This document shows positions 808 through 62,344 of a DNA stretch of 63,843 nt, one piece after another. How positions within the stretch are numbered: position 1 is the stretch's first letter; each line of letters opens with the position of its first letter. A program made the translations under genes and the position numbers. The DNA comes from Pocillopora damicornis (lineage: Eukaryota): the NCBI RefSeq assembly GCF_003704095.1, contig NW_020846678.1, forward strand, positions 186,158 through 250,000, read 5' to 3'. The notes beneath the pieces were generated by a model. It was not told the DNA's origin, ran no database searches, and saw only the letters and a program-made list of their open reading frames with translations.

Positions 808-3800
808 AAGAAACTCACCCCCTTCATAAAGAGAGAAAAAACTGACTAAGAACCTGCAAGAATAAATCACGACTATTAAGAACGCATAAAACGCACTACA
901 CCTACGCAAGGTTGGTTATCAAAATGATAATAATCATAAATAATAATGATCGTTGAAATCTTAAGTTTTCGGATCCCTTATAAGGTAACACAATCGTCCT
1001 TAGAACACTTATCGGATACGAACTTTTTTTTTGAGTTGAAGACTTTAAGAGCTCGTTGTGTTTGAAAGTAGAGTACGTCAAAATGTCGAAATATTTATCA
1101 ATTTCGAAGAAGAAATTCTTTCTCATGGATACGATGGGTGAGACCTTGCTCAAACCAGCTCTTGCGAGGAAAGCAGTTAAGCATTGTAAGAAAACACGTG
1201 ATAAATACCTGGTCCAGCTGGACGAATGACCGGTGGAACGATGATAGGACCTGAAACGATAGCAATAAGATAAAAAAGTAAAGGTTTGTAAAAAGCCATC
1301 GATCCATATTAATTCCAGTGCACTCAGTGAATTCTACTAGAGCATTTAGTTCGTTTTACTTTGAATGTTGCGCTAAAGATCTACAGAAAGGGAAATGTTG
1401 GATCACTCTAAACAGCTCCGTGACCAGATCCATACATGGCAGTCACGAAATACATTTTCTCTATCGCGAACAAATAACTGCAACGACGTTAATCTTCCAA
1501 TTTATACATCAATCACTGCAATTTACCTCGAGTGAAGCATCTCTTTTTCCGACGTAAAATTTGTGATGCTGATAAGGGCTGATCATACACCTGCATGCAG
1601 GAAATACGACCGAAGAGGTAACGCCTATCACCAGCGCGAGCTCCCATCCGTACAGGATAGTTCGTGGCCAGTCTTATCTTTCCAATGCGCCTACTTGCAG
1701 TAAACCGCCTGTTCACAAATAGCTTAGCAACGCCAGTTGTGCCATCGTAAGTTGCACCAACAAACTGCCATCGACGATTTAGGACTCTGGTTGTAACCGC
1801 CGCTGTAAATCGCCTTCCTTTACGACGCGTAAACCGTACAAACAGCGTCGTCGGTGAAACCATCCAAAAGTGCACGCCCCAGCCGTTCGGCATGTAGTTG
1901 AATATTGGTCCTGCACGTCCTTCGTGGTAAATCCATGCCAGTAAAGTAATGGACCGCTTAGTGTCGAGTTTACCGCGGTTAGGGAACTCGATGAAGCTGT
2001 TTTGGTGTCCGAGGAATCGCGTCGCTGTGTTGGGTCTTCCGTCCGGGCCTGTTATGTACCTGACGCTTCGAACGCTTCCCGCGGGATTACGATACAAACT
2101 GAGGTCACGACCGCGCGTACGCAAACTGAGTGGGTACACAGCCTGAGCTCTCGGGTTGATAACTGAAAACGTAAACCAAAAGGGTAACAGGTGCCTCTTT
2201 CAGAAATCCTGATTTATGGAAAAATGCTTAAAATTGCTTAACGCACTAGATCGGTACAGAAAACAGCCAGTGTATTTCTGCATTTACGATGATAACAAAG
2301 TTTAAACTTAAATATATTTACAAAACCAAAGTAAACTACTGGAGAGTTAGCAACACCAATTTTTTTTTGTCGTATCATAATGTTTATTTGTAATATGTGA
2401 ATTCGTTAAGATGGAAACCATCGCTCATCGATCTTAAGTTGCTTTCGCTTAGGAGAATGTTATTATTTTTTTTACAAGGCTGCTGTGATTCTTTTCATTT
2501 AATATGAAGCTCATATGGAGCGCTTTCGTTGTGATTCCACCCGGTTAAATGAAGTGCCATTTTCCTCTGTAATATCTTTTAGTCTAAAGTGTTTAAGGGC
2601 AGAAAGACTAATGACAACATTTACTTCTGATATTCCCCACTTTTTATTTTTATCCTTGTTTTCCTTACCTGGACGAACTGGGGGCTTACGAGGACGTGTA
2701 GGGCGAACCGGTGTTGGTCGTGCGGGAAGTGGATGCACTCCTAAAATGCAATATACAAAATAGTTTGGTCACAAAAAAGGTCATTTTTAATTGACTGTCG
2801 GAAGTTATCCAGGGTTGTATTGGTTTTACTTCACCCTGCTATGTGATTAGTTTCGAGATAACGCATCACCTCCTCAGCCAGTGAGATTCAAACTAAAAGC
2901 AGCTGCGACAGAGGCCCTAAAGGTTGAGGTTGTTTTCGCAAACATACTTTCAGATCTCATTGACAGTAACCTTTTTTTTTTTTGGCGTTTTCAGTTACTG
3001 TGATTCTTGTTTGAACAATGAGTGGCAAAAGGATTTGGCAAGTCTCTAATTAGAAGGTGGTCGACAACCCTCCATTGAATATATAAAACAGAAATGGGAT
3101 AAGTTACTCGAAAGTTCCCCTCTCCCTCTCTGACAATGTTGTATTAAATTAGCTCTATGAGCGAGGCCCATCAATTTCCCTCCGAAAGCTCCCCGTGACG
3201 TGAAAATATCAANNNNNNNNNNNNNNNNNNNNNNNNNNNNNNNNNNNNNNNNNNNNNNNNNNNNNNNNNNNNNNNNNNNNNNNNNNNNNNNNNNNNNNNN
3301 NNNNNNNNNNNNNNNNNNNNNNNNNNNNNNNNNNNNNNNNNNNNNNNNNNNNNNNNNNNNNNNNNNNNNNAAACAACAGACAGTTACAAAGTGTCGCTTA
3401 CCTTTAAAGCATTTTGTCTTTCGCTTGATGATCTGCCACCTGGACAGAACCCGTCCATAAACTTGCATACAGGAGATTCTCCCACGGAAGTATCTGCTTC
3501 TTGCAGCTCCCATGATTGCAGGAATGTTAGTACCAAGACGAACTCTTCTGAGCCGCGTGCGAGAAACGAGTCTTCCATTCACATAAATCCTTGTTTCACC
3601 CGTTTTCTGTTCATAAGAGGCGGCTACAAAGTGCCATCTTCGGTATCGCAATACTCCGCGCGCCCTCAGTGGGCGAATTCGGCTGTTCCGTGATCCACGC
3701 GGGAAAATTCGTATAAACAAACTACGCGCTCTACCGACAGAGAAATCGACGCCGTATTTGAAGATCGGTCCAGGGCCCTCGGGGTAAAGCCAAGCAAGTA

Positions 3801-6800
3801 ACGTTATTGCCTTTTGTGCGTCTAAACGACCGCGATTTGGGAATCGGATCAAGCTGTTTCTCCGACCGTAAAACTGGTATGATGTACCGGGTTTTCCATC
3901 AGGTCCGACCGCAGGCCTCACAAAGCCAAGAATGCCAGGTGGGTTTCCGAAGAGACCAACGTCTTTTCCTTTGATTCGGTACTGAAGAGGATAAATTGCT
4001 AAAGCACGCGCAGGTCCTAAGGAACATGTAAAAAGACAACGGCTGATTGAAGTCAAATATCAACCCATCCCTACGTAGTAATATGCTAGATTCACTGACT
4101 TAGATTTTTAAAAACAGTGGTGATTCATTTTAAGAATTATTGAGCCTCAAACCTAATTCTATAAAGGAATGTGTGCCTGATTATCTTAATGCAAATCTGG
4201 CAAGGAACCGCAAACAAAAATGCTGCCAGTGAACGTATCACGTTTTCAGTTTTTTAAAATCTTGTAGAACAGACTCTCATAAATTGTGGTATGCTATTAC
4301 GCTTCTGGCACTGTGATGATCTATTTTAGATGATAATCGATTCAATTATTTGTTTATTCAATTATAACCTATCAATCAATTTAAAATTGACGGTAGCAAA
4401 ATAGGTGAGGTATCGCACAGCAGCAGGATGCACTGAAAACATAAGTTCATGAAAAAATTGTGACTTGTAAAACAGAGTCTTTGGAGACAAGCTATAGAGA
4501 CACTTACCGGGCTTCGGAGGTCGACGAGTTGGTGGACGTGTTGGAGGCCTGGGTATAACTGGTTTGACAGGTGTCACGAATTTATCTAAAGTTAATGTAA
4601 ACACGTTTTAAGCCGAACAAAGTTTAAGTTATATTTATATATTATCTAGACTCAAACAAGTCGCAATCTGTTATCCTTCATAGTTTGACAATTTTTTTTT
4701 CGAGGAACGGAATCGCATATCAAAACGACAAAATAAAATAGACGCCAGGAACAGATACCAAGATCGACAGAAGTAGACGGAAAAAGATGCATCCTAGCTC
4801 TACAAAATTAAACGCTACAACGCAGAACAGAATTCTTCATCACCGAAACTAAGGTGAAATAATAATAAGCCGTTGTTGGACTGATTGAAACCAACGAAAA
4901 AATGGGACGAGGAAGGTAAAAAATTAGGAAAAACTGCAAGGAGCTACCAACCTGACTTGCAGACCTTCTTTTTCATGAGTGTAACCAAGGACTCAATATT
5001 CCTATACGCTGCTGTATAGACATGTCGACGATCAGTAGCAATGTACTGCAGCTCCCTAAAGTTGTAACGCCTTCCTATGCCCATAGCAAATACTTCTACT
5101 CTTGACCTTTGAATCAAAGCTGTTGCACCCCGGATATCATCTCTGGACGGGCCAGTGCTCGTCAAAACCAGGACCTTTCTCCTTGAGGTCCGGCTTATGA
5201 TGTTCCTGTATGAGTACTGCAAGGCAGCCCCTGTATAACGAGCTCCGCATACACGTTTCATGTTTTTGATGACTCTGATGACGTAGGACTTTTTGGCGCT
5301 GAAATTGATTAAGAGTTTGGGAAACTTCGCGTACGTAATCAAGCTGATTCGTACTCGTTTAGCGGAGATACGCAGCTCGCTAATCAAACGAATCAGGAAG
5401 GTCTTCAGACGGAGGAAGTTAGCTTTGGTAAAGCGGTCGTTTTCCGTACAAGCGTCTATAACAAAGGTGAGGTCGATCTTGGGTTTACAAACTGAGAAAA
5501 AAGGGGAATAAAAAACACACATTATTACAAGAAATATTTTAAATTAGCTTTGAGCAATATACTATAGAATTATAACAATCGACTGAAAAAACTCTCCTCT
5601 TGACTCTGATGATGACGGACGATTAAACTACACGATCAATTGTAAATTATGATAACAGAGTTTCTTTAGTCCAATGGTTCACTTCTGTACACTTTGGTGT
5701 TAATTCTTCGATTTTATTAGTGAAACGGGCTATTTTACCAGATGTGTAAGATAAGAGCTAAACATTATTTATATCACGAAGGGGATTCTAGCAAGACGGT
5801 ATAAAAGAGTACCATCAGTGGCTGTCAAAAAGCAAGAATATATTAATTGTCTGACCTTTTCCGGATGGTCCTGGCGGTCCACCTGTGGGAGAAAAATAAA
5901 CATGATTTGGGAATCATGCAAGTTTTTCTATAATGATTTTATAACATTGAAAGGTATGGAATAAATTTGAGGTACACTTTTAACACGCATGGGAAAAAAC
6001 TTTGGGAAAGACTGCAACACAGACAGATAGATAGCCAGAGAAATTGAAAAACAACCAGATGGACAGATAGATAGAATGACCGACGGACGGACGGTACGGT
6101 CAGATGGAATGGTATATGGATTTGTTTACCTACGCCACATGAGGAGCTCTTAGAAGCTCGCTAACTAGCGAGTTTGCATCAAGATCATATTATCTTTTGG
6201 GAAGAAAGGGGTAAAATGTTTAAACAACCGTGCTGATTTGTCACTCTAGTTAGCATCTTTGGTTTAATTGTTTAATTTGGGACATTGTAAATAAATAAAG
6301 GTATAGAATAACTCAATGAAACGTGAATCGTCAAAGATCCCAGCTACTGGAATGAGTACCAGAGGACTACTTAAAAAAAGCCACCAAAAGAGTTGAACGC
6401 TGGACTATCTAGAAAAAATCTAACTGAGAAAGAGAATAGACGTTTAAAAATTTAGAACTCCAAATATCAACCTCAGCCATTCATTCGCGATGGCTTCAGC
6501 AAAGGCAAACATTAAACTCAGCCCACCAGACAGACAGACACACAAACAACCCGACAAAAAGGCCGACAAAGGCAGACAGTAAGGCAGATAAAGGCAGACA
6601 TACGGACTGAAAAAATAGATGCATAAACAATAGACTGACAAATGGAGAGACACACGGACAACTAGACAGTAAATACAAACACGGACAGACATAACGACAC
6701 ACACTGACAAGTAGGTGCACAAACAATAGCAGAAGGATACACACAGAGACAAAGAAACAAATTAAACAAACCAACAATTAAGCAACTTACGTCTAAAGCA

Positions 6801-9800
6801 GCGCTTCTTCCTGCGTGCAATCTGATTGGGGTTCAATGCCACATCAAAAACCATTACACAAGATATGCGCCCGCGGAAATACCGCCCATCTCCTATCCTG
6901 GCACCCATCCTCACAGGATAATTTGTCGCTAGACGAATTCGGCCCAATCTCCTTTGCGCTATTACTTTACTGTCTAAATACAACTTTGCATAGCCCGTAT
7001 AGTGGTCGTATGTGGCAGCAATGTACTGCCATGTGCGAGGTTTAATACGAGGACTAGCAAGAGCAGTCGTGGATTTTCTTCCTTGTCGACGCGTATAACG
7101 TACAAAAAGCGTTCGCGGTGACACCATCCACAAATGCACTCCCCAGCCGTTTGGCATGTAGTTGAAGATCGGGCCCGCACGTCCCTCGTGGTAGATCCAT
7201 GCGATGATTGTGCTTGATCGTCTCGTGTCCAATTTCCCTCTGTTTGGGAACTGTATGTAGCTGTCCCGGCGTCCAAAAAACTGGTATGAACCTCCAGGTA
7301 ATTTGTCAGGGCCTGGTGCTGATTGTACGTAGCCAAGCTTTCCTGGTGGGTTGCCGAAGACACTGATGTCACGACCTCTGGTACGCGAGGTTAGAGGGTA
7401 GAATGCTGAGGCTTTAAATGGTCCTTGAAGAAAGAAAAATGAGAACAAAACATTTATAACGCTCAGGTTCAATAAGTATCAGACTGAACAAAGTAACGAC
7501 TTCTTACAAGACGCGCAAAAGCAAAGCGACATTTACTCCGCACTTTTGGATGTTATTGTATCCTAGGCGACTCTTTGGAAGACGCAAATTCTAAAAGAAG
7601 AGTAAAAGGTTCGCTCCTCTGAACATTCTCAGGCCTTTTTCAATTGTTTGAAGATTGATTAGAGATTCGATAATCTAGTATTATCAACTGAGTTGATAAC
7701 GTAAATTGGCCACCATAAATAGTTTCGCAGCTGACATTTCGAGCGTTAGCCCCTCGTCAGAGCAATTGGAGGAATTGTGGGTTGTGTGTGTGTTTATATG
7801 CAAAAAATGGAGCTACGCTATTGGTAGGAATACAGTGACGAGAAAAAAAGAATAAACTAGTTAATTAATACGGGCTCGTTGATACCGTGGGGATTAAGAG
7901 TACCGATTTGAAAGATAAATTTTTGTTCTAGAGTTTTGCGGCATTCAAGGTTCGTGTCGGCTTCCTAGTCATGGACATGTCACTGTGTTTTGAACGATGA
8001 TTATGTTATATTGTATACATGTAACCCTTACCTTTAGGTTTTGTTGGTGTTGGTGTTGGTGTTGATATTGGATGTGTCGGCGTTGGTGGCTTGGGTTTGG
8101 TTATGGGAACTTGGAAAAGACATACACAAATGAGACTAGTTAACTAAATAATCAACTCTTAGGCAAAAGAGATATAGCGAAGACAAGTAAGCAGAGGAAA
8201 GCACAGGAAAACACCAGAGTTCAGATATGTTTTGTTTCCACGTTACTCTGCAGGCACATTGATCCTAAGACCACATTTTAGGAGTGTTATTACAGTCAAA
8301 TTGTGCTAAGATGTCTGAATTGATCCGTTTGTAATTGAAATGAGGTGCATTGCCCAGTGTGCTAATCTCTATTGGGAAATTTTCTTACGACCCCTTCAGA
8401 AATTTATACTTGTCTTCGAGTGCGAACATTAAGTCTAGGGAGACGAAAGACACCAAATTTTAGAAAATGGATGGGATATCGTACCCTGAAAAACATTGGT
8501 TTATAGTGCTCATATTTAGCATATACAACACATGCGATAAGAAAGGTTAAGGCAACTGACTTTTACAAATAAAGATTAATTACTTTTAGGATCACTTACA
8601 GGGCCTGAAGCAGGTTTTACTAGCCGCTAAAATTTGTTTCCGGTTCAGCGCGCGACTATAGATCTGCACGCAGAAGATTCTTCCCTTAAAGTAGCGTTTG
8701 TCGCCATGTCGTGCTCCAAGCCTGATTGGATAGTTTGTTGCCAATCGGAATCGTCCGATACTCTTAACAACAAGTAACCTGGAATTAACCCAGAGTTTAG
8801 CAACTCCAGTCTTGAAGTCGTATGTAGCACCAACGTAATTCCATGCCCTGTAACGTATTTTTCTGCTGGTGACGACTACCGCCTTAGTAAATACGCCATC
8901 TCTGCGGACGAACCGCGCAAAAAGCGTGCGTGGTCCAATCATCCACAGGTGCACGCCCCATCCGGGACCTGCCCTGTAGTTGACTATGGGACCTTTTAGA
9001 CCTTCGTGGTAAATCCACGTCAAAATGGAGATCGACGCCACCGTGTCGAGTTTTCCATTGTTATTTGGGATTTCAATGTAACTGTTACGGTTGCCAAGGA
9101 ATTCAGTAGCTCCGTCTTTCCTTCCGTCTGGGCCCGGGGCAATTCTTACGCCAACGCGTCTTCCAGTGGGGCATTTACGTGGGCTGATGTCACGAGCGCC
9201 ATTGATTCTATCCAGTGGATAAACAGCCACCAATAGAGGAAGTTCTATAGAAAAAAATGAAAAGATGCCAATGTTACTTCTACGGGAAGAAATTTACAAA
9301 TTTGGCCCAAAACTCTTAAAGAAATAATTCCCGCAGAAGATATTGCTTCTTATTTTTAACCGGAGTGTCTAAACTCCTCATCCAAAAACAAATAATGTTG
9401 ACAGCGAAGAAAATGATCAAAGAGGTTGAAAACAACATGGAGGGGGTTGGGATGGGACAAAACGACCGCATGGTGAAAGTAACGCGTCAGTTATCCCTGT
9501 ATTTTGTTGAGGTGTTAAGTTATTTTACTTCTAATAGCCATAGCTAAACCTTGCGGACAGCCTATGCTACCTTGATTTTATTCCTTGACATTTTTTTTTA
9601 AGACCATTACTTTCTTTAAGAATTTCAGACTTTTAAGAAGTCCTGCTCAGTGATAGGTGCAGTCAAGAAGGAATTGAAATATCTTTCTCTCACCTGGAGG
9701 TGGTCGAGTTGGTGTAGGTCGGGCTAAGATAAGTGAAAAAAAAAAGATAAAAATGTTATTGATGAAAATCAAAAACCAAATTCAAATTCAGTACTTTCAG

Positions 9801-12800
9801 AAATTATTAGCAAGGCAAACCTCTGAAACATTTCTTTTTGATTCTCCTAAGCTGTCTTCCGGTCAGTGCTCGATCGTAAATCTGAAGACAAGCGATCCGC
9901 CCTCGGAAGATCCTTCTGTCCCGGGGCTTCTTCCCTGATATTGCCGGGTAGTTGGTAGCCAACTGAATCTTCCCGATGTTTCTCTGTGATATCGGTATGG
10001 CGTCATTCCATAGAGTGGCCAGACCCGTGACGTAGTCATAAGTTGCAGCTATGTAATTCCAAGTCTTTGGTTTGATTCTCCGGCTTGTGACAACGCTGAT
10101 GGTCTGCAGGGACCTCGGCACGAACTTCACCAGGAGAGTGCGAGGATTTTTCATCCACAGATGCACTCCCCATCCGCGAGGAAAATAGTGGAAGATTGGT
10201 CCGCTACCTTCGGGGTAGACCCACACAACGATGGTAAGGGAGTTCTTTGTATCCAGGCAACCCTTGTTTGGGAACAAGATGTAGCTGTTTGCGATGCCTT
10301 GAAGATAGTACGAACCCAATGGGAGGCCGTCAGGTCCTGGAGCCGGTTTAACGTTCACAAGTCTAGCAGCTCTGTTGCGGTTGATACTTATGTCTCTTCC
10401 TCGAGTGACGCCATTAAGAGGGTATATAACTCTGGCAGCTGCCGATCCAGTTACTGCAATAGAGAAAACGTAGTAAAAACTTCGGATGCCTTTTCTCTTG
10501 TCTTTTTAATCTAACGGTCACTTTCTCAAAAATCACGTCTGTCTACTGTCTTTCATTCAATCAGGGTACTATTGGAGACCGCAAAGCTGGTTCCCGACGG
10601 GCTGAAGAACCCCTTTTCAGAATCTTTTACGCCTTCCTGTCCCTTAATATTTAACTTTTACGCGAAAGCTCAACTCAAAGAATGAGTGGCAGAAATTGTG
10701 TTTGATGAAACTAAACAGTGACGAGGATATGAGAATGAAATTTGGGACGGCAATGATATAAATTCTCAAATTCCATCGCATAGAGTTATGGAATACCTGA
10801 ACAAGCTTTGACTCGCACAGCATTCAGCACCGCTGATAATGTCCTCAACGAAGCTGTAAACACATGGAGTCCATTTGTAGCGATCTGGTATAACTGTGTT
10901 TTGCTTGTCCTTCTACCAATAGCGACAACAAATACTTCAATTCCAATACGTTTTAAAACGCGTCCCGTCCGCTGTACACGGTCTACTGAGCGGGCACTTG
11001 CAAATACCACGAGCACACGCTTCCGTCCACATTGCCTTCTTCTTCTAAACAAGTACCTACGGGTATAGTGGAGAGCTTTTCCTATCCTGAGAGGACCTCT
11101 TTGTGGTCGAATCCTTCTTATGACTGAAAGCATGGAAGACGCCCTAAAGAAGCGGTTAAATCGGAACAAAGGCTTCGGTCTTGACGCGTACGTGACTACA
11201 CCGACGCGGGTTTCTTGGGTTGAAATTCGCAGTGAGTAGAGAAGTCGCGCTATGTTCCGGGTAAGTAGACGGAAAATTCCTCTGCCTGATCGACGCAAGG
11301 AGTAAGAGCTGTCTATCAGGAATCCTAGATCCATGTTTGCTCTGCAAGCTGCAAGAAAGAACATAATTTTAAAAATCATGTGTATATCTGTCATGCTGCG
11401 TGTAGGACAACTTAATTCTTAAAGAAAGCTTATACTATGGCTCTCCCCCTCTCCTTGCTTTGAAACCTTCAATCCACCTTTGTCGTAAACCTTGCTGAGA
11501 ACGTGTCAGATTTCAAAAGAAAAAAGGGAAATCAAAACTGAAGAACTTTTGTTACTAATGAAACTTTCGTTGCCCTACATTTAAAATTTTGAAACTGAGG
11601 GTAATCTTTGTTATGGTTCATAAAATAATTGTGCCTTGCACAAATGGAGATCGTGGCTACTTCTTTGCGGGTGAAGTGGAACAATCAATTCAGCTCCAAC
11701 GCTGAATTACCTAAATAATCATTAAAACTTACCATGACCTAGGTTTAACCTAATACTAAGATAATAAGAATAAGCCATCCTAGTCTACCAGAGATAAGTA
11801 CAACAGTCGCATGATTCAGAAGTAGTGTTATGCAGGGGTTTCAACAAGAAACTACTGAAACCCCTGGGGCAATGGCAAAATGCAAAACTGAATAGGAATA
11901 TTTTCCTAAGATGACCAACTAGAATTGATTAAGGTTTCGAGTACTTACGTCTTGGCGGGCCCGGTTTGGTAGGTGTTGGTGTGGGTGTTGGAGTAGGTGT
12001 GAAAACTTCTGTAAACAGAAGAATACATTTACAATTAATCAAACGTTATGAATATGTTGTAATGCCTACCTACCGATAGTTTATACCTCAAAGCAAGAAA
12101 CTGCTTAACGATCAAATATTCTGTGGACTTCCTTTAAAATCATACGGTACTAAAGCCATACTCAACGTAGCTGGAAGCAAGGTAGAAGTGTCGCCTTTAT
12201 TCAATATCAAATTAGTTTAGTATAAGTATCACTTTTATACAACTCTGAGCTCGTTATCCTTACTTGTCTTCAAACAAAGCCTCTTAGCCAATTGGATCTG
12301 TATTGGTCGCAGTGGTACGTCATAGATCTGCAAACATGTAATTCGTCCACGGAAATACCGCTTATCTCCAATCCGCGCACCCATTCTAGCAGGATAGTTT
12401 GTAGCCAGTCGAATCCTACCGATTCTTTTCCGGGCAACTTCTCTGTAATCGATATATAATCGGGCATATTCCGTACGCTGATTATAAGTAGCAGTGACGA
12501 AATTCCAGGCCTTGGGCTTGATAAGGTTGGTTTGCACGGCAGCTGTAAACTTTCGTGCACGAGTCACGAAACGAACAAGTAACACTCGTCGACGCACCAT
12601 CCACAAGTGGACACCAAACCCATCCGGTTTGTAATTAAAGATCGGTCCTACGGGGCCATCCGGATTTATCCAAGCCAGAATAGAGATTGAATTCCGAGCG
12701 TCTAATCGGCCTTTGTTCGGGAACTCGATGTAACTGTCAGAGCGACCTTTGAACCTAAATGAGCCACCTGGCCTTCCGTCTGGTCCTACGCCAGGGCGCA

Positions 12801-36800: not shown

Positions 36801-39800
36801 AAATCCCAAGAGGAGCCTAACTCTAGAGGTGTACAGTACAATGCCAATTCTAGCTTTCAGCCTGGAAACTTCAAATAACCTGACTGTGTCCTTTAAGAAT
36901 CTCAGGATGACACGGGAGCTGTACCTGACGCGAGACGCATCCACCAGGAAGCCGAGATCGATACGCTGCCTGCAAACTAACAGAGAAATAATAGAAGCTT
37001 AGGGAAAAGCATTTGCAAATCATCTTCAGTTTTCTTAAACTTTGTTAAAATTGTTAAAATAAGCATGATGAATATATTCTATCATGATAGGCCTACCACG
37101 TGGCGCTGGTTTTGGACGAGGACCAGGAGGAGGAGTAGGAGACGGAACTGCAAGAGAAGAGCTATCTGTTAATACCTTCGTGATCATAAAAAAGTTATCT
37201 TTAAGTCCTATGTACATGAGCTGTGTCATAAATTTAAACCTGTGTACCAGCATACATATACAGCTTTCTTATTCAGATTGTCATCAACGAAAGCTCAATG
37301 TACAAACCTTAACCTTTGTTATTTATTATTTAGAAGCATTTAAACAGAACGTGGTCAGCACAAACCTGGTAGAAAGCATCTCTGTTTAGCCGCGAAGATC
37401 TGTTTCTGGCTGAGTGCAGCACTGTATACCTGCGCACAAAAGAGTCGTCCTCGGAAATAGCGCCTGTCACCTTCCCGTGCTCCGAGTCTCACGGGATAAT
37501 TTGTCGACAACTTTATTCGCCCTAAACGTCTAATTCCGACGGGTACTGAGTTGATGTAAAGCGTCGCCACGCCCGTTCTGCCATCGTACTTTGCACCGAC
37601 GTAATTCCACGCCTTGTATTTCATTCTTCCACTTGTGATCGGTGACGTGAATTTCCCTGAGCGTCGCACAAAGCGCGCGAAAAGTTGGCGCCGCCCTGTC
37701 ATCCAGACGTGCACGCCAAAGCCTCGTGGATTGTAATTGAATATGGGTCCTGATATCCCTGCGTGGTACACCCAGATGAGAATAGTTATTGAGTATCTTG
37801 TGTCCAGCTTTCCTGTGTTAGGAATTTCGACGTAGCTGTTCCGTCGTCCATAGAAACGTAAGGATCCATCACGACGGCCGTCCGGACCTTGAGCCGTGCC
37901 TACGCCCATTAGAGTGGCCGAGGGATTTTTAGTTCGGCTGATGTCTTTACCCCGCCTCGGACCGTCCATAGGGTACACGACTACAGAATCTGGAATATAA
38001 ACTGCAAGATAATTGTAACAGAAAATAAATTCCAAAGTCAGAGGAAAATCTTCTCGTCTTAGTATCAAATTTGCTGTGACACGACCTGAGTGACCTCAGT
38101 GTTAGCGGATCGGAATCACTGTAACAAAATTTCAACTGGTAGCAACAATCAAAAGAAGATTATGATATAGCTCGTTTAAGAGCTGGTTTGAAATGATACA
38201 TACTTCTTGTTGGTGTAGGCTTAATTGGCCCTCCTGAAACGGAAGAAAAGATATTTAATACTCCGCCCTGATAAAGCCCTTGTGCCATATCAAGCTAAAC
38301 TTGAATAAGTCTTCCCTTTCCTTCAGCAGCAAGGATTTTTATGAACTTATATCTCTGTTAGCCTGCGAGTACTCTTCTCTTATTTTCTTTACTTCTCGCA
38401 GGAAATTCCTATACATTTTCTGAACTTGTGTCTTTGTTTCTCATCCCAGAGAAATATCAGTACAACATTCATGTACTAACCTGTAGGTTGGACAAGCTGA
38501 CAGATTTTGGACCTTATCATCTTTGATAAAGCAGCCAACCCTCTGAACGATACAACAGAAACATGGTTCCTGTCTGTGGCAATCTGCAACAACTGTCGTC
38601 TCTTCAGCGCTCTTCCGATACCAACGACAAAAACCTCAACGCCTTTAGCCTTCAACAGCGACGCCTGACGCCCGACGCGGTCCTGTGATATACCATCCGT
38701 GAGCATGATCAAGACGCGCTTGCGATTCCGTTGCCTACGTCTGCCAAATAAGAATCTCCTGGTGTAAGCCAAAGCCTTGCCGATGTAAGTCTTTCCACGA
38801 GGGTACCTAATGCTGTCAATAGCCTGTTGCACGTGCGTGATGGTGTTCAGCTGGCCAAATCTGAACAGTGGAAATGGATTGGTGGAGAAGAGCACTGCAC
38901 CCACACGCGACTGTGTTCTTGAGACGGGCAGCGTGACCACAATGGATTTTACGAAGCGAAGCATAAGCCTAAAGTTTCCTCGACCGTGATATTCGATACT
39001 TCCAGAGCCATCAATTAAGAAACCAAGGTCTACAACTGTTCTACAGACTGAGAAAGCAAAGTAACGAGTAAAATAAGTCAGTCCGCCCCTTGGTCAAATC
39101 CTAATTGAAGGTTACGGGTCAAGTAACGGTCACAGTCACCCACCCACTAAGAGAAGGCCGTCCTATTTATTAGTTTTACTGGAGCTTCTTCTGAACGTTC
39201 TACAAGAGCTACAGGAAGTAGTTCTGGTCACAGTTATCTCATTCACTGTTGCTACTGGATGGGGATGAACCATCTAAAATTCCCTGATAAGCTTTTGACT
39301 ACATCATAGATACCAGTCAGGGGTGGAACTTGAGAAGAGAACTTCCTCGAACGAAGCTTAGACACAACAATTATTGGGCCCACTTATTTGTCACTGTCCA
39401 AAGAAAAAGGTCAGAACATTGCCAAAGGACTTTGAAATCTTAAGATAAAAAAAATTCACATTTAGGACTGGCGTTCAGAAAGTAAGGAATCACGTGGATA
39501 GCCAAAAGTAGGCGCAAACGCTCATTCGTCAAATCTAAAAGAAACTTTCAAGGTTGGCCGACATATGACAAATTTCCATAAGAACGGACCATTGCCTGGT
39601 CGAGGAGGTGATCAAGGTATTCAATACCCCTTTTCTATAAGGTTGTTTTGAGGATTTTTGTTTAATTGGATATTATCAGAATTACTTTTGCCGTAGTCGT
39701 TGCCCCCCCCCAAAAAAAGAAAACACACTTTGATAAATCGTACCTGGTGGGGGAGGTGTTGGTGGCGGTTGTCCTGTTGATAGAAAAAGAGAAAGAGTGA

Positions 39801-42800
39801 TTTGATTTAATGGCGAGCTAATGTAAGCTATGAAACATAACTAAATTGCTGTGCAAGAAGTAGTTGGAAACTGCTCTTAAGGTACGATTCAGTTGAACGT
39901 ATCCATTCGTTTGGTACACAAGGTCGTTTCGTGGTTGCGCATCAAAAATGTACGTCACGTAAACAAAACTTATCTAACGCTGGTAATATTGTTTTTGAAC
40001 ATAAGAAAACCTACTTATTTAAAACATACCTGACATGGATAACACATTTTAGTAGAATGGGTACGAAACGAATCGACCGACCGGGTACAAAGGGTCCTAG
40101 CTGGGTATGAATCGACTTGGTACGAAACGACTCTTAGAAGAACAGATATTTTACAATTAATGAAAGTTTAGCCAGGCTTACGTTTGAAACATCTCCTTGC
40201 AGCATTTATGACTTGCTTTCGCGTAAGCGCCACGCTGTAAACCTGAACACAAGATACCCTGCCACGGAAGTACCGACGATCGCCAATTTTTGCACCCATA
40301 CGCACGGGTCGGTTTGTCGCCAGACGAATTTTCCCGATGTTAGACCGAACAACTGGTCGATTATTCACCCACAGTGTGGCCATTCCTGTGTTTCCATCGA
40401 AAGATGCACCAACGAAATTCCACGCTTTGTATCGCACGTTGTTGCCATGGGTTACGAGCGGTGTGGTGAAGCGACCACCCCGTCTGACAAACCGGGCAAA
40501 GAACTGTCGAGGTTTTGTCATCCATAGATGCACGCCCCAACCCGGACCACGATTAAAGTTAAAGATCGGACCAGCATAACCCAAGTGCAAGACCCAGGCC
40601 AACACTGTTATGGAATTCTTTGCGTCTAGCTTTCCAGTATTCGGGAACTCCACGTAGCTGTTTCGATTCCCAAAGAATTCGGTAGCTGTGTTCGGCCACC
40701 CGTCAGGACCTGGCCCTGTTCTCACACCAACAAAGGTACCAGTGGGGTTTCGGTTTCCGCTGACGTCACGTCCTTGGTATTGTTCGTCGAGGGGGTAGAT
40801 GGCAACAATGCGTGGGAGACCTGAGTTGAAGCCAGTGTAAAATAGTAAGTGGACGTACTGATTACAATTTTGCTACTTGGAGACAAATAAGGTCCATATT
40901 TCTGAGGGATAAGGCGATCAAAATCCGGCGCGCACACAGCTGACACTTGAAAACGATCGAAAAGCTGCAAGCACGATACTTAAACTGCGTAACTGAACTA
41001 GACACCGTAACAAACTAGGACATTTTCGTTTTTACATTTGGAGACAAAAATTGCAAATGGTGTATAATCACGTTCTACTGCGAACTACAATGTCCCACCC
41101 ATTTCAAAGGTACTGATTACAATGACACATTTTCCCCTAGAGCGGAGGCACCAAGTTCAAACCCCAAAACCACCAAGTTCAAACTCCCCAGGCTGTTTCT
41201 TTCAAACTTAGAAAACGTAAATATGTAGAAATTATTCGGAACATTTTTTTAACGTACCTGGCGTTGGTTTCGGTGTCACAGGTCCTAAAAAAGAAATGGA
41301 CAATTGTTTAAGGTACAAGATTTTTAAGTAAGTCAGCAGAAGTATGCATGCAAACGGCCCCGACGAAGCGCTGAGTTCTAAATCGGTGTCTTAAGTATCT
41401 ATCTACTTCACACCATTTGAACTGTGTGCAGCAAACTTGGTTGAAAATGTATTCACCGAATATCAGTTGAAGATACGAAAAATGTACCAGAAAAAATTTT
41501 CAGTGCGGATCGAAACAGGCGTAGTGAATTATAAGTTTCCTGCCACTTGTTAAATGATTTGTACTTTTTTGAAGGACTTCACGACGCGAATCGTTTATAC
41601 TAGTGATGTCAGATAAAATATACCAACTTACTTGCGCGGAAGCAAAATCTCTTGAGCCTCCTTATCTGATAAGAGTTAAGTGCAAGATTGTAAATATGAA
41701 GACACGAGATGCGACCTCTGAAATGTCTAGGGTCACCGGGCTTTCGTCCTGAAATAGCTGGGTAATTTGTGGCCAGTCGAATCCTCCCGATATTTCGTTG
41801 AGTGATTGGAATAGCATCCAACCACAAGGTTGCCAAGCCAGTTTTCTGATCGTAAGTAGCAGCAATGTAGTTCCACACTCGGGAACGTATTCTCCTAGAG
41901 ATCTTGAACGATTTTCTCCGGTTGCGAGTCACAAACTCCGCACGGATTACCCTTCGGCTAATCATACGGAGATTGACACCGATACCCCTGGGATAGTAAT
42001 GGAATATCGGTCCAGCACTTTCTGGGTAGAGCCACAGAAGGATGGTGATTGAGTTATGTGTATCCAACCGTCCGGTATTTGGGAAGTAAATAAAGCTGTT
42101 GGCAAATCCTTGCAGTTGGTAAGAACCAGCGGGAAGCCCATCAGGTCCGTTCTTAGAAACGACATTGACAAGTCTTGCAGGCGGGTTTTTAAAGGGGCCT
42201 TTGTCTTTTCCACGTTCTATGCCATTTAATGGGTATACGCCCATAGCCGGGGGTGGCTCTGTTGGAATGAAAACAAACGTAATCGGATTATTAAGCCAAT
42301 AGTATAAATTAAAAGTAATAATGAGTGTGATATTTTTCACAAATCCCATTAGTTTGCCTCTGTCAATGACAATGCCACGTAAAAATCATAATATTAACAA
42401 AGAGGGAATATAGACTCAGTGTGTAAATAGCTGGCTTACCACAGTAAGAAAGATAGAAAACATGGGCAACCTCCCCCCCCATCTGCCAATTACAAGACGT
42501 ACAAACACTGGTCTATTAGGACTAAGTTCCAACTCAAGTAGTGAATTGTTGGAGATATGTAGTTACCAGAGGGAAACTGTCACATAATAACATTTTCTTA
42601 CCAATCTTTGGTGATGGTTTTTTTGTCACATATGGGCCAGGCTCTGCAATCAAAGAAAACATGAAACGTCAGTACAACATTAAATTCTATTGAAACATGA
42701 TGTAGCTACAACGTTACAAACTTCATTCCTCTCTTTCTCTTCTGAAGAGATGCACATTAAAAGAACTGGATTTTTGAGGCTATTCATCGTCTTAGATCAT

Positions 42801-45800
42801 CAATAAAACGAATTCCAAATTTGCAGGTTGTGTAAAATTTTTAGCGGTTGAGAACTTGCACGTTTGCGCCAATATATAAAAGTCTTCAAAGGTTAAAGAT
42901 CTGTATAAATGTGATTCTTAGTTGCCGTTCGTAATATGAATTACATCGAGGATTGTTGAATTTTTTACTTACTCCTTGTTGGTGTCGGTTTTGGAGTAGC
43001 TGCACATATCTTTGCCACAAGTTTTGGCAGGTTGGTTGTAATTCTCAATCTTACACCAGTGAACACGTGGTGACGGTCATTCGCTATGGTAGACAAAGAG
43101 GTCATGCTGGTCCTGCCACCCATTCCAACCGCGAATATCTCGACCCCAGCTTGCCTGAGCATCTCGGCAGGCCGCGCAACACCATCGGAGGATCTACTAC
43201 CAGTGACAACTACAAGGACTCTGGCTCGAGAAGACGACCGTGACCCAGTATACAAATATCTCTTAGCAAAGCGCAACGCGCGTCCTGTATACGATCGTCC
43301 GCGAGGAAAGCCGATCTTTTTCACTGCCTTTAACAAATCGTATTTGCGCGAGAAGGTACGGAAATTAGATACCGGAATTGGAGTGTTTGAATACGCAATA
43401 ATACCGACACGAGTATAGATCCTAGAAATGTCAAAATATCTGATGATCAATCGTGCGAGGTAAAGGACTTGGCTGAATCTATACCGACTGCCACTGCCGT
43501 CAAGTAGGATACCAAGATCAATACGAGATCTGCAAGCTAAATGAAGATTTTAAAGTATAAAAATTAATTCATTTTATAATCACAACATGATACTTTTTCC
43601 ATAACAAGGGTCACCATTTTCCGATTAAAGCCAATTCTAAATTTATTGCACATTTTCAGGATACAAAAAGCTTTACATAAATATAAATTGTTTAATTTAA
43701 GTATAAAGAGAAGTTGGACGGTTTAAAAAACTCTTAGATTTAAATAGGAGCATAACGGGTTTAAAAGCTACAACTTACTTTTTCCCCGAAGGGGTGGTGC
43801 CGGTGTTGGTGGTGCAGGAGTGGGGAAAGCTGAAAAATGCAATAATACGAAAAGAAGGAACAGTTATGTCAATCAAATTTGCCTCTAAATTAAATAACAA
43901 ACAACAAAAAGGAACACGTTAACCAAATGAAAACAAAGGGGGCTCCCCCCTTTACACCCTTACATCAGTATCAATTTTCTCCACACTATTCTCTGTACAT
44001 TTTCCATGGTATTGAAATGGAGAATTTGTTTAGAAGTCGAGAACTTCTCTTGTTGATACTCTAACGACCTTAACGTGTGATTCGGGAGGTAAATTTAAAG
44101 AATAATTTATATGCTAAACGCTTTTTGGGGTCAAAGAGTTAAAAGAATTATACTCACCTTTAAAGCAAAGTTTCTTGGCGATCCTGATGAGTCGTAATGA
44201 GAGAGCTACATCATAAACCTGCATACACGTTATCCAACCACGAAAATTGCGATTATCTCGTATTTTTGCACCCATCCTAGCAGGATAGTTTGTCGATAAA
44301 CGTATTCGACCAATAGCCTTAGTAGCGACTCTTTTGTCGTTGACATACAATGCTGCAACACCTGTGTTCTGATCGTACGTGCAACCAACAAAACTCCAGG
44401 ATCTGCGCCTAAGGATTCGACTGATCAGCGGCGGTGTCATAGCTCGCGTGCGCCGCACGAAACGTGCAAATAGTCTTCCTGCGCGTGTAACCCAAAAATG
44501 GACGCCAAACCCCCTGGGATCGTAGTTGAAGATAGGTCCCGCACCCCCATGGGGGTTGATCCATGCTAAGAGAGTGATGGAGTTCTGGGTGTCAAGTGGT
44601 CCCGTGTTGGGGAACTCAATAAAACTGTTAGGCTTTCCTGAAAAACTGTACGAGCCACCACGTCGTCCATCGGGGCCGGGCGCTGGTTTAACGTTGAATA
44701 ATTTTCCCGGCGGATTCCTCTTGGGACCAACGTCATAACCTCTGTAACTCACCGTCAAGGGGTAGAAGGCAACAGCATCCGGGAGTCCTATTAAGGGAGG
44801 CCAGGTTTATATGTCATGTTGGCGTAGTGACGTGTAAACTAATATTATTAGATAAACACCAATGGAATAAAGAGTGAGCTTTCGCGCGAAACATGACATC
44901 TTCACACGTGAAGATAACATGTTATTTTATCACGTGAAGATAAGATGTTATCTTAACACGTCAAAAGATCAATGTTGCTCTGGTTACAGCGCATGGTTCT
45001 ACTTCAAAAAAAAAAAAAGCGAAATGAGTTAGTATTTCATTGATGTTTATATCATAAATAGAATATTACAAGGCCGCTTATAGATTTTCCTTCTCGCGTT
45101 AAAAAATAATTCACTCGTTCGTTTTGCGCATTCGTGAAATATTTTTTATCACTCGAGGAGAAATTTCGTATCTCCGTACGGCCAGGTAATATCATCTATG
45201 TAAGAGGTTATTGTACTGGTGTCGTGGCTTTTTAAAGCTTTAGAAGTTGTATGCGCGTTATGAGAAGAGGTTTGCGATGTAATAGATGAAATATATTCCA
45301 TCTAACCACTTACTTTGAGGTGGCTTGGGCCTCTGTGTTGGACCTAAGAATGACAATAAATTTCAAATATCAGTGTTACGTCAATTTTGCCCAGCTAACC
45401 TGTAGAGCAGGCGTAATTTTGGCGAGCGAGTGCTTAGTATTTTCCAAGCGAAAATTATGGCCGCCATCTTTGATTTTAACAGCAGCGGAAGGCTGGGGAG
45501 AACAAGAACATTTTACCGAGGGGTGGGAGTGAGGGAGTGAATATTTTCGACCTTCTTTCTCCCCCTACCCCCACCGTCCACTCTGACTCCAAATCAAACA
45601 TGGCCGCTCGGATACACTATTGGGAGCTTTTAACGTTAACTCGCCTTACTAAGACAACTGCACTGCAGGCTACTGCCTCGCCTAAAAGAGGAGCCCTAGT
45701 TGGCTTCTTTTTGCCACCCATCATTCTCTTCGAAATATTTCCAAAGGTACGTGGCTCTGCGCGTGGTAGCGCCGCTATGATATAAATAAATGCAATAAGA

Positions 45801-48800
45801 ATTGTTACTCACGTGCTCGGAAGCAAACCCTTTCAGCTCTTTTTATTTCAGGACCAGACAAGGGTACACTGTACACTTGCATACAAGAGATCCTTCCACG
45901 GAAGTACCGCAAGTCACGCGGCAATGCACCCATTCTTACGGGTCGATTGGTAGCTAGACGAATGCGACCAATGAACAGAGACTTAACAGGTTGAGAGTCT
46001 CGCCATAGCGTTGCAATTCCTGTCCTTTCGTCATACGACGCTCCAACGTAATTCCACCTTCCAGGTCTCAATGTGCGACTGATCAACTGCCGGGTTGGTC
46101 TCCCTGTGCGGCGGACAAATCGCACGAACAGAGTATTCGGTCTGACGACCCAGAAGCGAACTCCTCCCGGAGAAAAATGAAATATTGGTCCAGAACCTTC
46201 AGGGTATACCCAGGCGAGGAGAGTCAGGGAGTATCTAGAATCGAGTTTTCCCTTGTTGGGGAAATCTATATAACTGGTTTTTCTTCCGTAGAAATAGTAG
46301 GAACCATCAGGCAGCCCATCAGGGCCAGGTGCGGGACGTACGTTGTGTAACTTTCCCTCGGGGTTCTGGCTAGAGCTGATGTCTTTACCTCTTGTTTTTC
46401 TACTGAGTGGGTAAAACGCAACGATACGGGGGAACCCTGAAAATTTGAAACAAATTCGATAAATAAAAACATACAATCGTAGCATAATTATTAAAATGAA
46501 CAGTTTATTTTTGTTACATGGTATACATCATGAAGAGGCCCTTGTGCCGTAAATTTCATAGTTACTATATTAAAGATTCTCGTGTGCTATAAGGAGCAAG
46601 ACATTTCCGGACTTGAAAGAACTGGGTAATGTCGAAAGGAATGCATTTAAAATTTCAGTGCGTTTGCAAGCTGTAAACCTTACGAATTAAATTCTTTGAT
46701 TAGTAATGGGAATGAATGCAGTTCCTGACTTATAGGTACAAGATTTGTTTAAAGATTTTTATAAACTATGGGCGACAAATTTATGTGAAAACAACTTAAC
46801 TAACACTTAATTATATAGCGTTTGTAGATCGCGTCCCTTGGTTTAGATACCGTTACATAATGTATTTTCCCGCGCATCTCATTTAAACCTTTAACAATGA
46901 GTTTCCATTACCAGAAAAACTACACTTACGTGTTCTTTTAGTTGGCTTTGTAGTCGGTTCTGAAAGCAAAAGAAAGATGGTACGAGAACGGGTCACTTTA
47001 ACACAAAACTACACTTTCACCATACACATGACTAACTCGTCGCTTTTCTGCATTTTCTTGTGTTTTGAGTCCAGTCCACTTTAATTTCAAAAACCAATAT
47101 TGCGGTATGCCTCAACATTATTTTTGTGAATGGGCTTAAAATCGAGCGGCCCAGCCTCTGTTTTCAAACGGTTTTAAAAAAATCATAACGAGTAAACAGA
47201 ACCACGATTACTATCATAAGGCGTCCGTGAGGATTCAGAGTAAAAAACGAACAAACTTCCTGCGGCGCAGGAAAATCTGTGATCGAGCGACGAGTGACGA
47301 GTGTGCATCTGTTGGTCGACAGAGTGCCTGGATTTTCTATACCAATCACGGAGTGGTAAACCAAAGATTGAAAAAGCCCGGATTACTTGCGGCACTCGAA
47401 ATTTTAAATATTAAAGTTACCACTTACTTATTGGGGGTCTGGTGATGGGACAGAGGCAGACACGATGCTTCGCTGGTAAAAGATTTCCACCAGTGCCTGA
47501 AAATAAATAAGACGAATTGGATTGCTTGCGTGAACTAAAACTAAAAGTCACTTCACCTATCGCATGTTTAAACAAGGTTGATAACTTGGAGTATGTCAAG
47601 CCACAGCGGTTGTCATTTTTTGGGATAAGCAGCGAGGTGGACTAGGAATGAGGTGAGAGAAACGACATAATAAAGTAAACTTTTTCGTGGTCAGATTTTT
47701 GGTTAAAATGGCTGCTTCTTACATAAATCGCCCGATACAGTAATATATTAAAGTACACCTTTTCTATGTTCAGATTTTTCGCTTAAATGGCTGCTTCTCA
47801 CAAAAATCACCGATACACCCACATAACCTCGAGTAAGTGCTATGGAAATTAATATCAATTTTAGATCATTTCATTGCCCATTTTTTGTATTTAAAGGATT
47901 TTCATATCCTGTGTGAAATTGTAGATATTCACAGTCATAGATCCAAGTCCGTAAACACTTAGGAGAGGGAATTGAAGTACCAAGGATTCGAAATAATAAA
48001 GTTACGCACCTAAGCAAATTGCGTTCCTGAGTTCGTTAACTACGATTCCCAAATGAGTCCAGTCCGCAGTAAAGATGTGATTCCTTCGAGGAGGAGAAGC
48101 CATAATGTCTAACTGACGACCATTAATGTACCGTCCCACCCCTAGACAATAAATCCTTACACCACGGGCCTTTAAAGCGTTTGAAGGTCCTGCAACGTCA
48201 TCCATCGAACTTCCATCGGTTATGACCACTACTACCTTAGTGGTCCTTGAACGTCTGGTGTTCTTACGGAACATCTGGTTTTGCGCCATCAATAAAGCCC
48301 TACCAATACGACTCCCTGATTTGGGGTAATGGACCCCCTTGTTAAGCCTGTTGAAGATAGCGCCGTTGTTTGTGTAGCTGTTAAAGCCGAAAAGCTTATA
48401 CGGCTTGGTACCAAACACGATGGCTCCCACGCGCGTGTTTGTTCGGGAGACTGAAAAACCGAGGACAACATTACGGACGAAGTCGATCAACCGTCGGAAG
48501 TTTCCGATGCCATAACGTTCCACGCTTGCTGAGCCGTCGATCAAAAATGCAAGATCTATGGCAGTTCTGCATGCTGTTGGAACAGAAAAAAGAGCAATAA
48601 AATTGTTTGATGCATATTGGCAGAGAAAATGTAATGATAAACTAGGGCTTATCCATCTACCGTTTTCAAATAAAATGTGACCACTTCTAATTAATAATTT
48701 GTTGAACTTCAATTTCGTTGCCAACAAGGAACAAAGTTTGGGTCTTTGAGGGATATATATTTTTTAGTAATTAAATCTTAAAATAATTTAAGGGATCTTG

Positions 48801-62072: not shown

Positions 62073-62344
62073 GCCCCCTTACCACATTGGGTAAAGACAA
62101 CAAAAGTAAAAAAAACCATTCTAGAATCCCATGCTGCCTAGAAAAGATCGATGTGGAAAAACCCAACTAGCACAATTCAATAACTTCTCAAATATATTAT
62201 TAATAATATTAATTATGGCTGAAATAATGCAAATCTATATGTTCCTTTCTTGCTGTGGTCGCTTAGGAACAAATTTTAGACGCAAAACGGATAGGGGAGG
62301 GTCTGTTATAGTGTTGAAATAAATGCCCTTTCTCCAACTGTTCA

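Follow-up and report, generated by a model that had tools for sequence, protein, structure and literature searches.

How much positive charge can be loaded onto ordinary folded extracellular domains, and to what end, is the question raised by a locus of the coral Pocillopora damicornis. The window (the whole stretch of DNA analysed, 63,843 nucleotides of contig NW_020846678.1 in assembly GCF_003704095.1, equivalent to C3313:186158-250000) has a GC content of about 0.40-0.44, a eukaryotic-looking composition and, on its minus strand, a long row of stop-free segments of 190-260 residues each. Between 1527 and 46436, limits which coincide with exon ends, this row comprises 31 exon pieces holding 18 Laminin_G_3 domains (L modules) and 11 von Willebrand factor type A domains (vWA; V modules), and the 5,816 residues encoded have a net charge of +818, taken as Arg plus Lys minus Asp minus Glu. 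With slightly better than even confidence, we favour the reading that this is one large expressed gene for a secreted beads-on-a-string polycation, which would bind and cross-link polyanions outside the cell or within a secretory organelle.

The charge of the array is extreme. Counts were made exon by exon, with exons never joined into a spliced model and with searches and folds likewise run on single exons. Over all 33 exon pieces of the window (6,183 residues, net +866) there are 848 Arg (13.7%), 299 Lys (4.8%), 191 Asp (3.1%) and 90 Glu (1.5%), and whole modules range from +23 to +37 with isoelectric points (pI) of 10.81-12.00, the exception being the V1 module (48010-48573) at +18. The first-pass annotation of this DNA had described an extreme Arg enrichment throughout 1527-46436 and a net charge of several hundred, both of which are borne out by these figures, and its hand count for the L module designated L18 (1527-2162), with about 33 Arg, 7 Lys and 8 Asp or Glu in about 208 residues, is close to the 34 Arg, 7 Lys, 6 Asp and 2 Glu present in 211 residues. 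Its total of about 31 domains needs adjusting, as the 31 pieces hold 29 domains, plus any present in a gap-ridden zone at 17732-22122. A codon or base-composition cause of the Arg excess was rejected, given that all six Arg codons are in use (CGN 502, AGR 346 in the window exons) and Lys is unchanged.

Expressed as density, the charge amounts to +1.23 per kDa in L modules and +1.29 in V modules, as against +0.03 and -0.04 in paralogues from the same genome. The engineered +36 variant of green fluorescent protein (GFP) carries about +1.3 charge per kDa, which is comparable, and proteins are considered naturally supercharged from about +0.75 per kDa, a value exceeded by both kinds of module. A class of naturally supercharged human and viral proteins is described in two papers (PMC3855322; PMC11400631). 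Such proteins are either disordered or small, and most of them bind nucleic acid inside cells or in viruses, whereas the coral protein would be a secreted polymer of some 50 folded domains. No natural secreted polymer of about 50 folded domains, of two unrelated folds and at the charge density of +36 GFP, was found in print.

Whether this charge is simply a property of the domain families can be judged from the same genome, where profile searches returned 92 L and at least 150 V matches, of which a full-length subset of 61 L and 52 V modules was measured. L modules of the array gene (27) range from +23 to +40 and those of contig C3436 (8) from +26 to +39, with 26 modules on 15 other contigs lying between -11 and +12. 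The corresponding V values are +18 to +37 in the array gene (18 modules), +18 and +21 on C3436 (2 modules) and -14 to +16 for 32 modules on 11 other contigs. Among the measured modules, supercharging is thus confined to the array gene and one paralogous locus, which indicates that the charge is not typical of the family in this genome. The shift is specific to Arg and to the loss of acids: in basic as compared with other L modules, Arg is 13.0 vs 4.6%, Lys 5.0 vs 4.6% and Asp plus Glu 4.0 vs 8.9%, and in V modules the values are 13.1 vs 5.3%, 5.8 vs 6.5% and 4.3 vs 12.3%. The earlier view of the charge as special was therefore upheld in as far as it exceeds a near-neutral family background, and not in its variant of an adhesive based on cation-pi contacts between Arg and aromatic residues. 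The latter finds little support, as the aromatic content of L modules equals that of neutral paralogues (Tyr 5.0 vs 4.7%, Phe 5.6 vs 5.7%, Trp 1.9 vs 2.1%) and that of V modules is only slightly higher (Tyr 3.8 vs 2.5%).

When the 35 basic L modules were aligned with the 26 others, 21 columns emerged in which the frequency of Arg or Lys rises by at least 0.4, these being occupied in the paralogues mostly by Glu, Gln, Thr, Asn, Gly or Ser; only 5 columns are basic in both groups. A quick maximum likelihood tree of the same 61 modules (IQ-TREE; duplicate rows, modules containing X and those spanning less than 180 positions of the profile left out) places all 35 basic L modules on one side of a single branch, with a Shimodaira-Hasegawa-like approximate likelihood ratio (SH-aLRT) value of 94. 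In this tree the L modules of the array gene and of C3436 interleave, and an L module of +12 on contig C1472 adjoins them. The C3436 locus resembles the array gene in the charge of its modules and in this interleaving, and differs in being richer in Lys (about 26 Arg and 16 Lys in each L module), in a Gly/Pro-repeat coding stretch (C3436:241000-241700) upstream of its vWA and in having far fewer vWA domains in the stretch fetched. An intermediate charge has been observed at C1472:656861-672977, on the minus strand, for both an L (+12) and a V (+5) module, a locus which might possibly picture the state before supercharging. Taken together, two unrelated folds have shifted in the same way in the same genes, as if the overall charge of the protein, and not a single binding site, had been the target of selection.

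The charge is carried by globular folds and not by low-complexity sequence, as the first-pass annotation had proposed. Ten full modules tested matched either VWA (PF00092, expectation values (E) of 1e-23 to 1e-40) or Laminin_G_3 (PF13385, E of 1e-14 to 1e-18). The VWA cut-off of 23.8 bits was passed by 12 of 12 V segments (nine whole at 82.7-139.9 bits, three split halves at 44.5-76.2) and the Laminin_G_3 cut-off of 27.6 bits by all five L modules scanned (52.6-67.5 bits), one L module also matching Pfam Pentaxin at 26.4 bits. An AlphaFold2 model of L18, based on a 92-row alignment, is an all-beta sandwich with a mean predicted local distance difference test score (pLDDT) of 97.0 and a predicted template modelling score (pTM) of 0.93. 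For the V module with the highest charge (10798-11346, net +36), a model from a 19-row alignment displays the alternating strands and helices of the alpha/beta vWA fold (pLDDT 91.9, pTM 0.90). Both models are confident, and the gained Arg residues are spread over the 21 alignment columns of the L module. In Foldseek, the best matches of the L18 model are the jelly-roll subdomains, of concanavalin A (ConA)-like type, of clostridial neurotoxin binding domains, with TM scores of 0.63-0.77, 12-18% identity and half of the target chains aligned. Membership in the neurotoxin receptor-binding family, whose proteins also possess a C-terminal trefoil, a translocation and a protease domain, was rejected, with Toxin_R_bind_N scoring 18.4 bits against a cut-off of 23.8 in one of five L modules, and only the ConA-like fold is shared.

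Each bead of the array is flanked by an N-terminal and a C-terminal Cys. A functional metal ion-dependent adhesion site (MIDAS) has a DxSxS loop with downstream Thr and Asp. Of these, DxSxS and the Asp of TDG or SDG are kept together in 7 of the 13 V modules of the window, and one or both are lost in the other 6, which include the most Arg-rich beads. Judging from these motifs, the seven could hold a ligand carboxylate through a metal at the predicted site.

Among solved structures, the best sequence matches of the V profile are collagen VI alpha-3 (9 stretches, 872 bits) and the mussel byssus proximal thread matrix protein 1 (PTMP1; 4cn8, E of 4e-64), and it also matches von Willebrand factor (VWF) A domains at E of about 1e-21 to 1e-24; the L profile has weak matches only. 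The collagen VI alpha-3 array and PTMP1 are likewise extracellular tandem vWA beads, whereas the coral beads alternate with Laminin_G_3 and each domain carries +18 to +37. Collagen VI moreover has a Gly-X-Y triple helix between its vWA arrays, and no Gly-X-Y collagen frame was detected among the minus-strand open frames of at least 90 residues in the window, nor was one seen among its exons. Polydom/SVEP1 similarly combines vWA with a pentraxin or ConA-like jelly-roll in a secreted matrix protein, with the difference that no Pfam match to Sushi, EGF or HYR occurs in the coral pieces scanned. The LG domains of laminin alpha, agrin and perlecan, as well as VWF A1, bind polyanions through basic surface patches. 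They belong to the same fold classes, and the patch is set on an otherwise ordinary domain, whereas the coral L module gains basic residues at 21 columns along its whole length and has had its acids largely removed. The array protein is, in these terms, a multi-vWA/LamG matrix protein taken to a charge extreme.

That the locus is a real gene is indicated by RNA. A segment of 5.9 kb (30100-36000) was compared with contigs of four RNA runs from four different studies, these being coral and marine metatranscriptomes including PolyA and Oligo-dT libraries, whose contigs carry no expression level, strand or transcript ends. Splice joints fall exactly at the predicted exon ends, all as CT..AC on the plus strand and hence GT-AG on the minus strand: 30873>31187 and 32241>32586 occur in all four runs, 33223>33666, 34235>34707 and 34754>35256 in three, and 31735>32191 in two. 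These joints also revealed three unpredicted exons, two of them Pro/Thr linker mini-exons (34707-34754 and 32191-32241) and one a micro-exon (33425-33442). A sequence scan recovers the same three and predicts candidate Pro/Thr(/Lys/Arg) mini-exons between most other modules. In one run (X1), some contigs are wholly intronic (window 32302-32547 and 33463-33695) and derive from pre-mRNA or from DNA in the library. The RNA contigs differ from the window at 32 exonic positions, 19 synonymous and 13 nonsynonymous. As a rule of thumb, a ratio of about 1:3 is expected without constraint, from which the observed 19:13 is far removed by its excess of synonymous changes. The array gene is therefore real and expressed.

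These observations also bear on the possibility that the array is non-functional, be it a decaying repeat array, an assembly artefact or an unselected drift in composition. The many gaps and the duplicated, inverted pieces in 17732-22122 would fit such a view, as would public annotations consisting only of fragments of 210-684 residues. Against this stand the 33 open exon pieces with intact splice sites, the spliced RNA in four runs, the synonymous excess, the confident models, an identity of 88-90% with orthologous modules in named corals, and a shift that is specific to Arg, employs six codons and affects two unrelated folds. This explanation has already been largely refuted and is the least credible of those weighed. 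It is also very improbable that the product is a polyprotein precursor cut by furin-type convertases at RR or RKKR runs into some 50 small basic proteins. Basic runs such as RRKKR do lie close to the C-terminal Cys of some L modules, but R-x-[KR]-R sites number 15 against 20.9 +/- 4.1 in 500 shuffles of the same exons, and they sit within folded domains, outside the Pro/Thr linkers. The candidate was rejected on this lack of enrichment.

A secreted product is suggested by the head of the gene, which was located with a protein model from Oculina patagonica, P0236 (KAL9981499.1, 646 residues). This model is colinear with the minus strand of the window and consists of a signal peptide, a WSC-like domain, an acidic spacer and V1, its residues 1-420 having a net charge of -13. 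The head exons were found by tblastn, with rows kept at 60% identity or more. The first coding exon (54134-54265) matches P0236 residues 1-44 at 75% identity and contains the start codon and a hydrophobic N-terminus predicted as signal peptide (MLSSSLLRAILFLLVAS...), followed by a conserved dibasic site (...NEKR). A Pro-rich N-terminal exon (52807-53100) matches residues 68-171 colinearly at 67%, and the WSC-like Cys domain is encoded at 52056-52349 (residues 153-242, 81%). The domain is labelled WSC-like only because the Pfam WSC family (PF01822), with a cut-off of 27.8 bits, is missed at 25.4 bits in the window (52035-52325) and 24.9 in P0236. An open frame at 50477-51067, with exon ends unmapped, encodes a spacer rich in acidic residues, Pro and Thr (7 Arg, 17 Lys, 12 Asp, 20 Glu), which occupies the same place in the order as the acidic part of P0236 and is absent from the tblastn rows of at least 60% identity. 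V1 (48010-48573, net +18) is supported by Pfam and the exon count and is 90% identical to its P0236 counterpart (tblastn stretch 48586-48008), and a small exon after it (47435-47497) is identical to P0236 residues 614-634 in 21 of 21 positions. All head exons lie on the minus strand.

The array also continues beyond the window, with 9 more L and about 11 more V modules downstream on the same strand, reaching about C3313:157.6 kb. Measured on hidden Markov model (HMM) envelopes, these modules (C3313 about 157.6-186.2 kb) total 4,088 residues and a net charge of +617. If the array is one protein, as we infer, it would comprise about 10,270 module residues with a net charge of about +1,480, read from a single transcript across the whole array. 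Directly past the last basic module, at C3313:156398-157012 on the minus strand, there is a further Laminin_G_3 domain (Pfam E of 2.5e-15), different in type and not basic, which is either the tail of the array gene or part of the next gene.

Several points weigh against the favoured reading. The RNA contigs span five consecutive modules only, and not one 30-kb transcript; the 4,088 downstream residues are joined to the gene by strand, spacing and family only; and the zone 17732-22122 could separate two genes. Modules of intermediate charge exist (L at +12 on C1472 and on C217, V at +16 on C165), and the compared modules are a chosen, mutually related subset, such that rank tests overstate their independence. 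Charge-driven binding, finally, is weakened at the ionic strength of seawater.

According to the reading of a secreted polycation, the protein would run from signal peptide through WSC-like domain and short acidic spacer to about 50 single-exon vWA and Laminin_G_3 domains joined by short Pro/Thr linkers. In one clade, both unrelated folds would have turned polycationic by the replacement of putative surface polar or acidic positions by Arg and the removal of Asp and Glu, resulting in about +1.25 charges per kDa, or about +1,480 over some 10,270 residues should the array be one protein. Such a multivalent polycation might bind and cross-link matrix proteins rich in acids, glycans that are sulfated or acidic, or the surfaces of microbes. 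A preference for Arg over Lys could be explained by paired hydrogen bonds to sulfate, carboxylate and phosphate, which would survive seawater ionic strength, and about half of the vWA beads keep a predicted metal site which may hold a ligand carboxylate. Polyanion binding or condensation, as proposed by the first-pass annotation, is a plausible function.

Relatives in other organisms constrain where such a protein might act. A search of 1.84 billion representative sequences with the L profile yielded 684 proteins at E of 1e-30 or less. Of the best 150 of these 684, 148 have a full L module and 48 are basic (net at least +15), all of them single-module proteins of 173-309 residues; the other 100 of the 148 average +10 or less. 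Ten that were looked up include named proteins of Hydra (P0070, +4), Nematostella (P0044, +5) and amphioxus. Nowhere among the best 150 of 684 does a protein carry more than one basic L module, which leaves room for longer models because short sequences can represent clusters with longer members. A search of the ESM Atlas returned only generic LamG clusters. For one L exon, all 77 homologues of at least 180 residues carry +17 to +41 at 46-98% identity, and a charge of at least +17 is likewise present in 51 of the 52 full-length homologues of one V exon. The named basic relatives belong to the stony corals Orbicella, Oculina and Desmophyllum and to at least one sea anemone, Nematostella, of which a partial protein, P0343 (EDO50081.1), contains a basic V module of +28 at 50% identity. 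A model from Orbicella faveolata, P0234 (XP_020613580.1), spans a V C-terminus, a Pro/Thr linker, an L module and a second linker, its L module being 88% identical to 41633-42256, and a 684-residue model from Desmophyllum pertusum is 68% identical to the P0236 head. Orthologous modules in the named corals are 88-90% identical to those of the window.

The named public coral models of the gene are fragments of 210-684 residues, labelled 'vitrin-like', 'uncharacterized' or 'hypothetical'. Vitrin consists of an LCCL domain followed by two vWA domains. No Pfam match to LCCL was found in P0236, where sub-threshold WSC and VWA are the only matches, and the name 'vitrin-like' reflects the vWA domain only. 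No paper on this protein was found with domain or charge terms, the NCBI name, accessions, or nematocyst, supercharged-protein or polycation terms in a search of main texts.

One candidate role is that of a cnidocyst content protein, either the basic, eosin-staining material of spirocyst tubules or a counter-ion to the poly-gamma-glutamate of nematocysts, and thus a component of a specialised organelle and not of the general matrix. It accords with a basic family present in stony corals and in one Nematostella vWA module, the named Hydra L relative having a charge of just +4. Cnidocyst proteins often have a propeptide ending in KR, and a conserved dibasic site (...TNEKR/QNI) has been observed about 24 residues past the predicted signal peptide, both at 54134-54265 on the minus strand and in P0236 residues 1-44; this site could mark a propeptide. 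The cnidocyte-specific genes that distinguish nematocytes from spirocytes in Nematostella include some for vWFA-domain proteins, which the section concerned does not identify (PMC12549020). The taxon range on which the cnidocyst reading draws consists of few named sequences. A cnidocyst role is in our judgement unlikely, while being the alternative to which we attach most weight.

A narrower proposal is that hexacorals build giant polycations from ordinary folded matrix domains and that the array protein is the strongly eosin-staining substance of spirocyst tubules, namely the adhesive microfibrils by which prey and substrate are glued, a proposal which we treat as a doubtful conjecture. In Lophelia, the material filling the spirocyst tubule is described as strongly eosinophilic (basic) and interpreted as adhesive microfibrils (PMC5363355). 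If the proposal were true, spirocyst adhesion would consist in shooting bead chains of +1,500 charge, in metre-per-gram-scale supply, onto negative surfaces, and the supercharging of vWA and LamG domains would underlie, at the molecular level, an organelle of cnidarians with a chemistry that is not known to have been worked out.

The stony coral relatives (Orbicella, Oculina and Desmophyllum) also invite the view that the organic matrix of the skeleton, which is acidic, has its cationic counterpart in this protein, a calcification-specific scaffold that would form coacervates with sulfated glycans and acid-rich proteins below the calicoblast layer. Coral skeletal proteomes frequently contain vWA and laminin-G-type domains (PMC4890752). 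Passages of two skeletal-proteome papers contain no entry matching the protein, which supplementary tables may list as 'uncharacterized protein'; absence from published lists is weak evidence, because trypsin would presumably cut a protein with 14% Arg very short. A role restricted to calcification is weakened because a basic vWA module is known from Nematostella, a non-calcifying sea anemone. On these grounds a skeletal function seems improbable. Passages of a Pocillopora spatial-expression paper have nothing on this gene.

A defence polymer of the surface mucus, agglutinating or killing microbes by charge in the manner of cationic antimicrobial proteins, would be consistent with the extreme charge density, the lectin-like ConA-like fold of the L modules, the WSC-like head and expression in adult coral metatranscriptomes. 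The size and bead architecture look structural, though. Immune effectors usually evolve fast, unlike the orthologous modules of this gene, which are conserved at 88-90% between corals, and a defensive role is accordingly held to be quite improbable.

Two textbook matrix modules have here been supercharged and kept so across coral families. The array constitutes a natural experiment on the tolerance of folded domains to supercharging, for which the neutral paralogues of this genome can serve as controls. It also offers a candidate for the basic content of spirocysts, or for a cationic counterpart of the acidic coral macromolecules that have been studied so extensively, and a template for salt-tolerant Arg-based underwater adhesives or coacervates. 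There is, in addition, an annotation problem, with a gene known publicly as fragments and an Arg content which would be expected to hide its protein from tryptic proteomics.

The exon organisation of the array is regular. On the minus strand, to which all the exons listed below belong, HMMs built from the window's own modules identify 18 L domains and 13 V domains. A module is typically a single exon with polypyrimidine tract, AG acceptor and GT donor, flanked on either side by a phase 1 intron; one extra intron interrupts each of two vWA domains, and all 33 pieces are open with intact splice sites. Apart from those in the RNA-covered segment, which are given below, the L exons, with net charges from the exon count, are as follows. 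Supported by Pfam are 1527-2162 (L18, +33, also modelled as a folded module), 6791-7423 (+30), 22123-22764 (+30), 27085-27714 (+32) and 45813-46436 (+24). The HMM map supports 8600-9244 (+28), 9821-10453 (+27), 12264-12896 (+29), 13399-14001 (+28), 25666-26301 (+25), 37366-37989 (+28), 40182-40820 (+23) and 44158-44787 (+24). Exon 41632-42258 (+26) is 88% identical to Orbicella P0234 over 208 residues, and 3402-4016 (+37) was placed by the exon map. The assembly gap 3213-3370 begins 31 nucleotides beyond the donor of this last exon. It breaks no exon because it falls inside an intron and, as all exons are phase 1-1, its length has no bearing on the frame, although it could conceal a small exon.

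The V exons outside the RNA-covered segment were counted in the same manner. The first, at 2-543 (+30; Pfam), runs off the window start. Supported by Pfam and checked for MIDAS motifs are 4952-5491 (+28), 14585-15118 (+28) and 36434-36976 (+29, 19.4% Arg), in all of which the site is lost, and 23803-24366 (+25), in which it is kept; it is likewise kept in 38481-39047 (+26; HMM map). Exon 10797-11348 (+36, pI 12.0; Pfam) is the folded V module modelled above, and 42973-43536 (+26) is 73% identical to Orbicella P0234. The first split V domain consists of an N-terminal half at 17439-17731 (3' end approximate) and a C-terminal half at 16077-16349 (5' end approximate), both supported by Pfam, the HMM map and the exon count. 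The second is made up of an N-terminal half at 29309-29541 (3' end approximate; HMM map and exon count) and a C-terminal half at 28812-29150 (5' end approximate; Pfam, HMM map and exon count).

Within the RNA-covered segment, the exon count and RNA joints define L exons at 30205-30873 (+31), 32586-33221 (+31; joint 32241>32586 in four of four runs) and 35256-35924 (+23; joint 34754>35256), and, together with Pfam, V exons at 31187-31735 (+32, MIDAS lost; joint 30873>31187 in four of four runs) and 33666-34235 (+25, MIDAS motifs kept on motif check). The linker mini-exons, identified from RNA joints and translation, encode PKPTTPVTKPTTPPPR (32191-32241) and VVPTAPTQKPSTPRP (34707-34754, joints on both sides in three of four runs). 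The micro-exon (PTPP...) corresponds to 16 letters inside the joint 33223>33666 (three of four runs) and is placed at 33427-33442 or 33425-33442.

The zone 17732-22122, delimited by the HMM map and a block comparison, contains nine assembly gaps and vWA fragments on the plus strand, and its blocks 19214-19621 and 20028-20229 are 90-95% alike. Because of these gaps, plus-strand fragments and near-identical blocks, continuity across the zone is not established; at least one vWA module in it was left out of the counts, and the gaps were kept unfilled. At 18715-20254 on the plus strand, two near-identical C-terminal vWA fragments (…RVKRPAEALKGAGVEIF…ICYSPGK) lie between assembly gaps, as though parts of a single vWA exon of the array gene had been duplicated and placed in the wrong orientation.

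Upstream of the giant gene, a vWA domain extends over three minus-strand exons (59019-59297, 58355-58660 and 57843-58157) and is far less basic than the array modules. A start resembling a signal peptide (MLTYLHLAILLLFRAISG) is located upstream of this split domain (57843-59297), at 59893 on the same strand, and 57843-59893 is probably a separate small secreted vWA gene. A short way upstream of the giant gene, the plus strand, opposite to it, also carries an L-type (Laminin_G_3-like) module (62318-63025), in two open frames covering profile positions 13-110 and 153-223 and with three stops within the match in the genome search, which may represent a pseudogene or a module with an intron.

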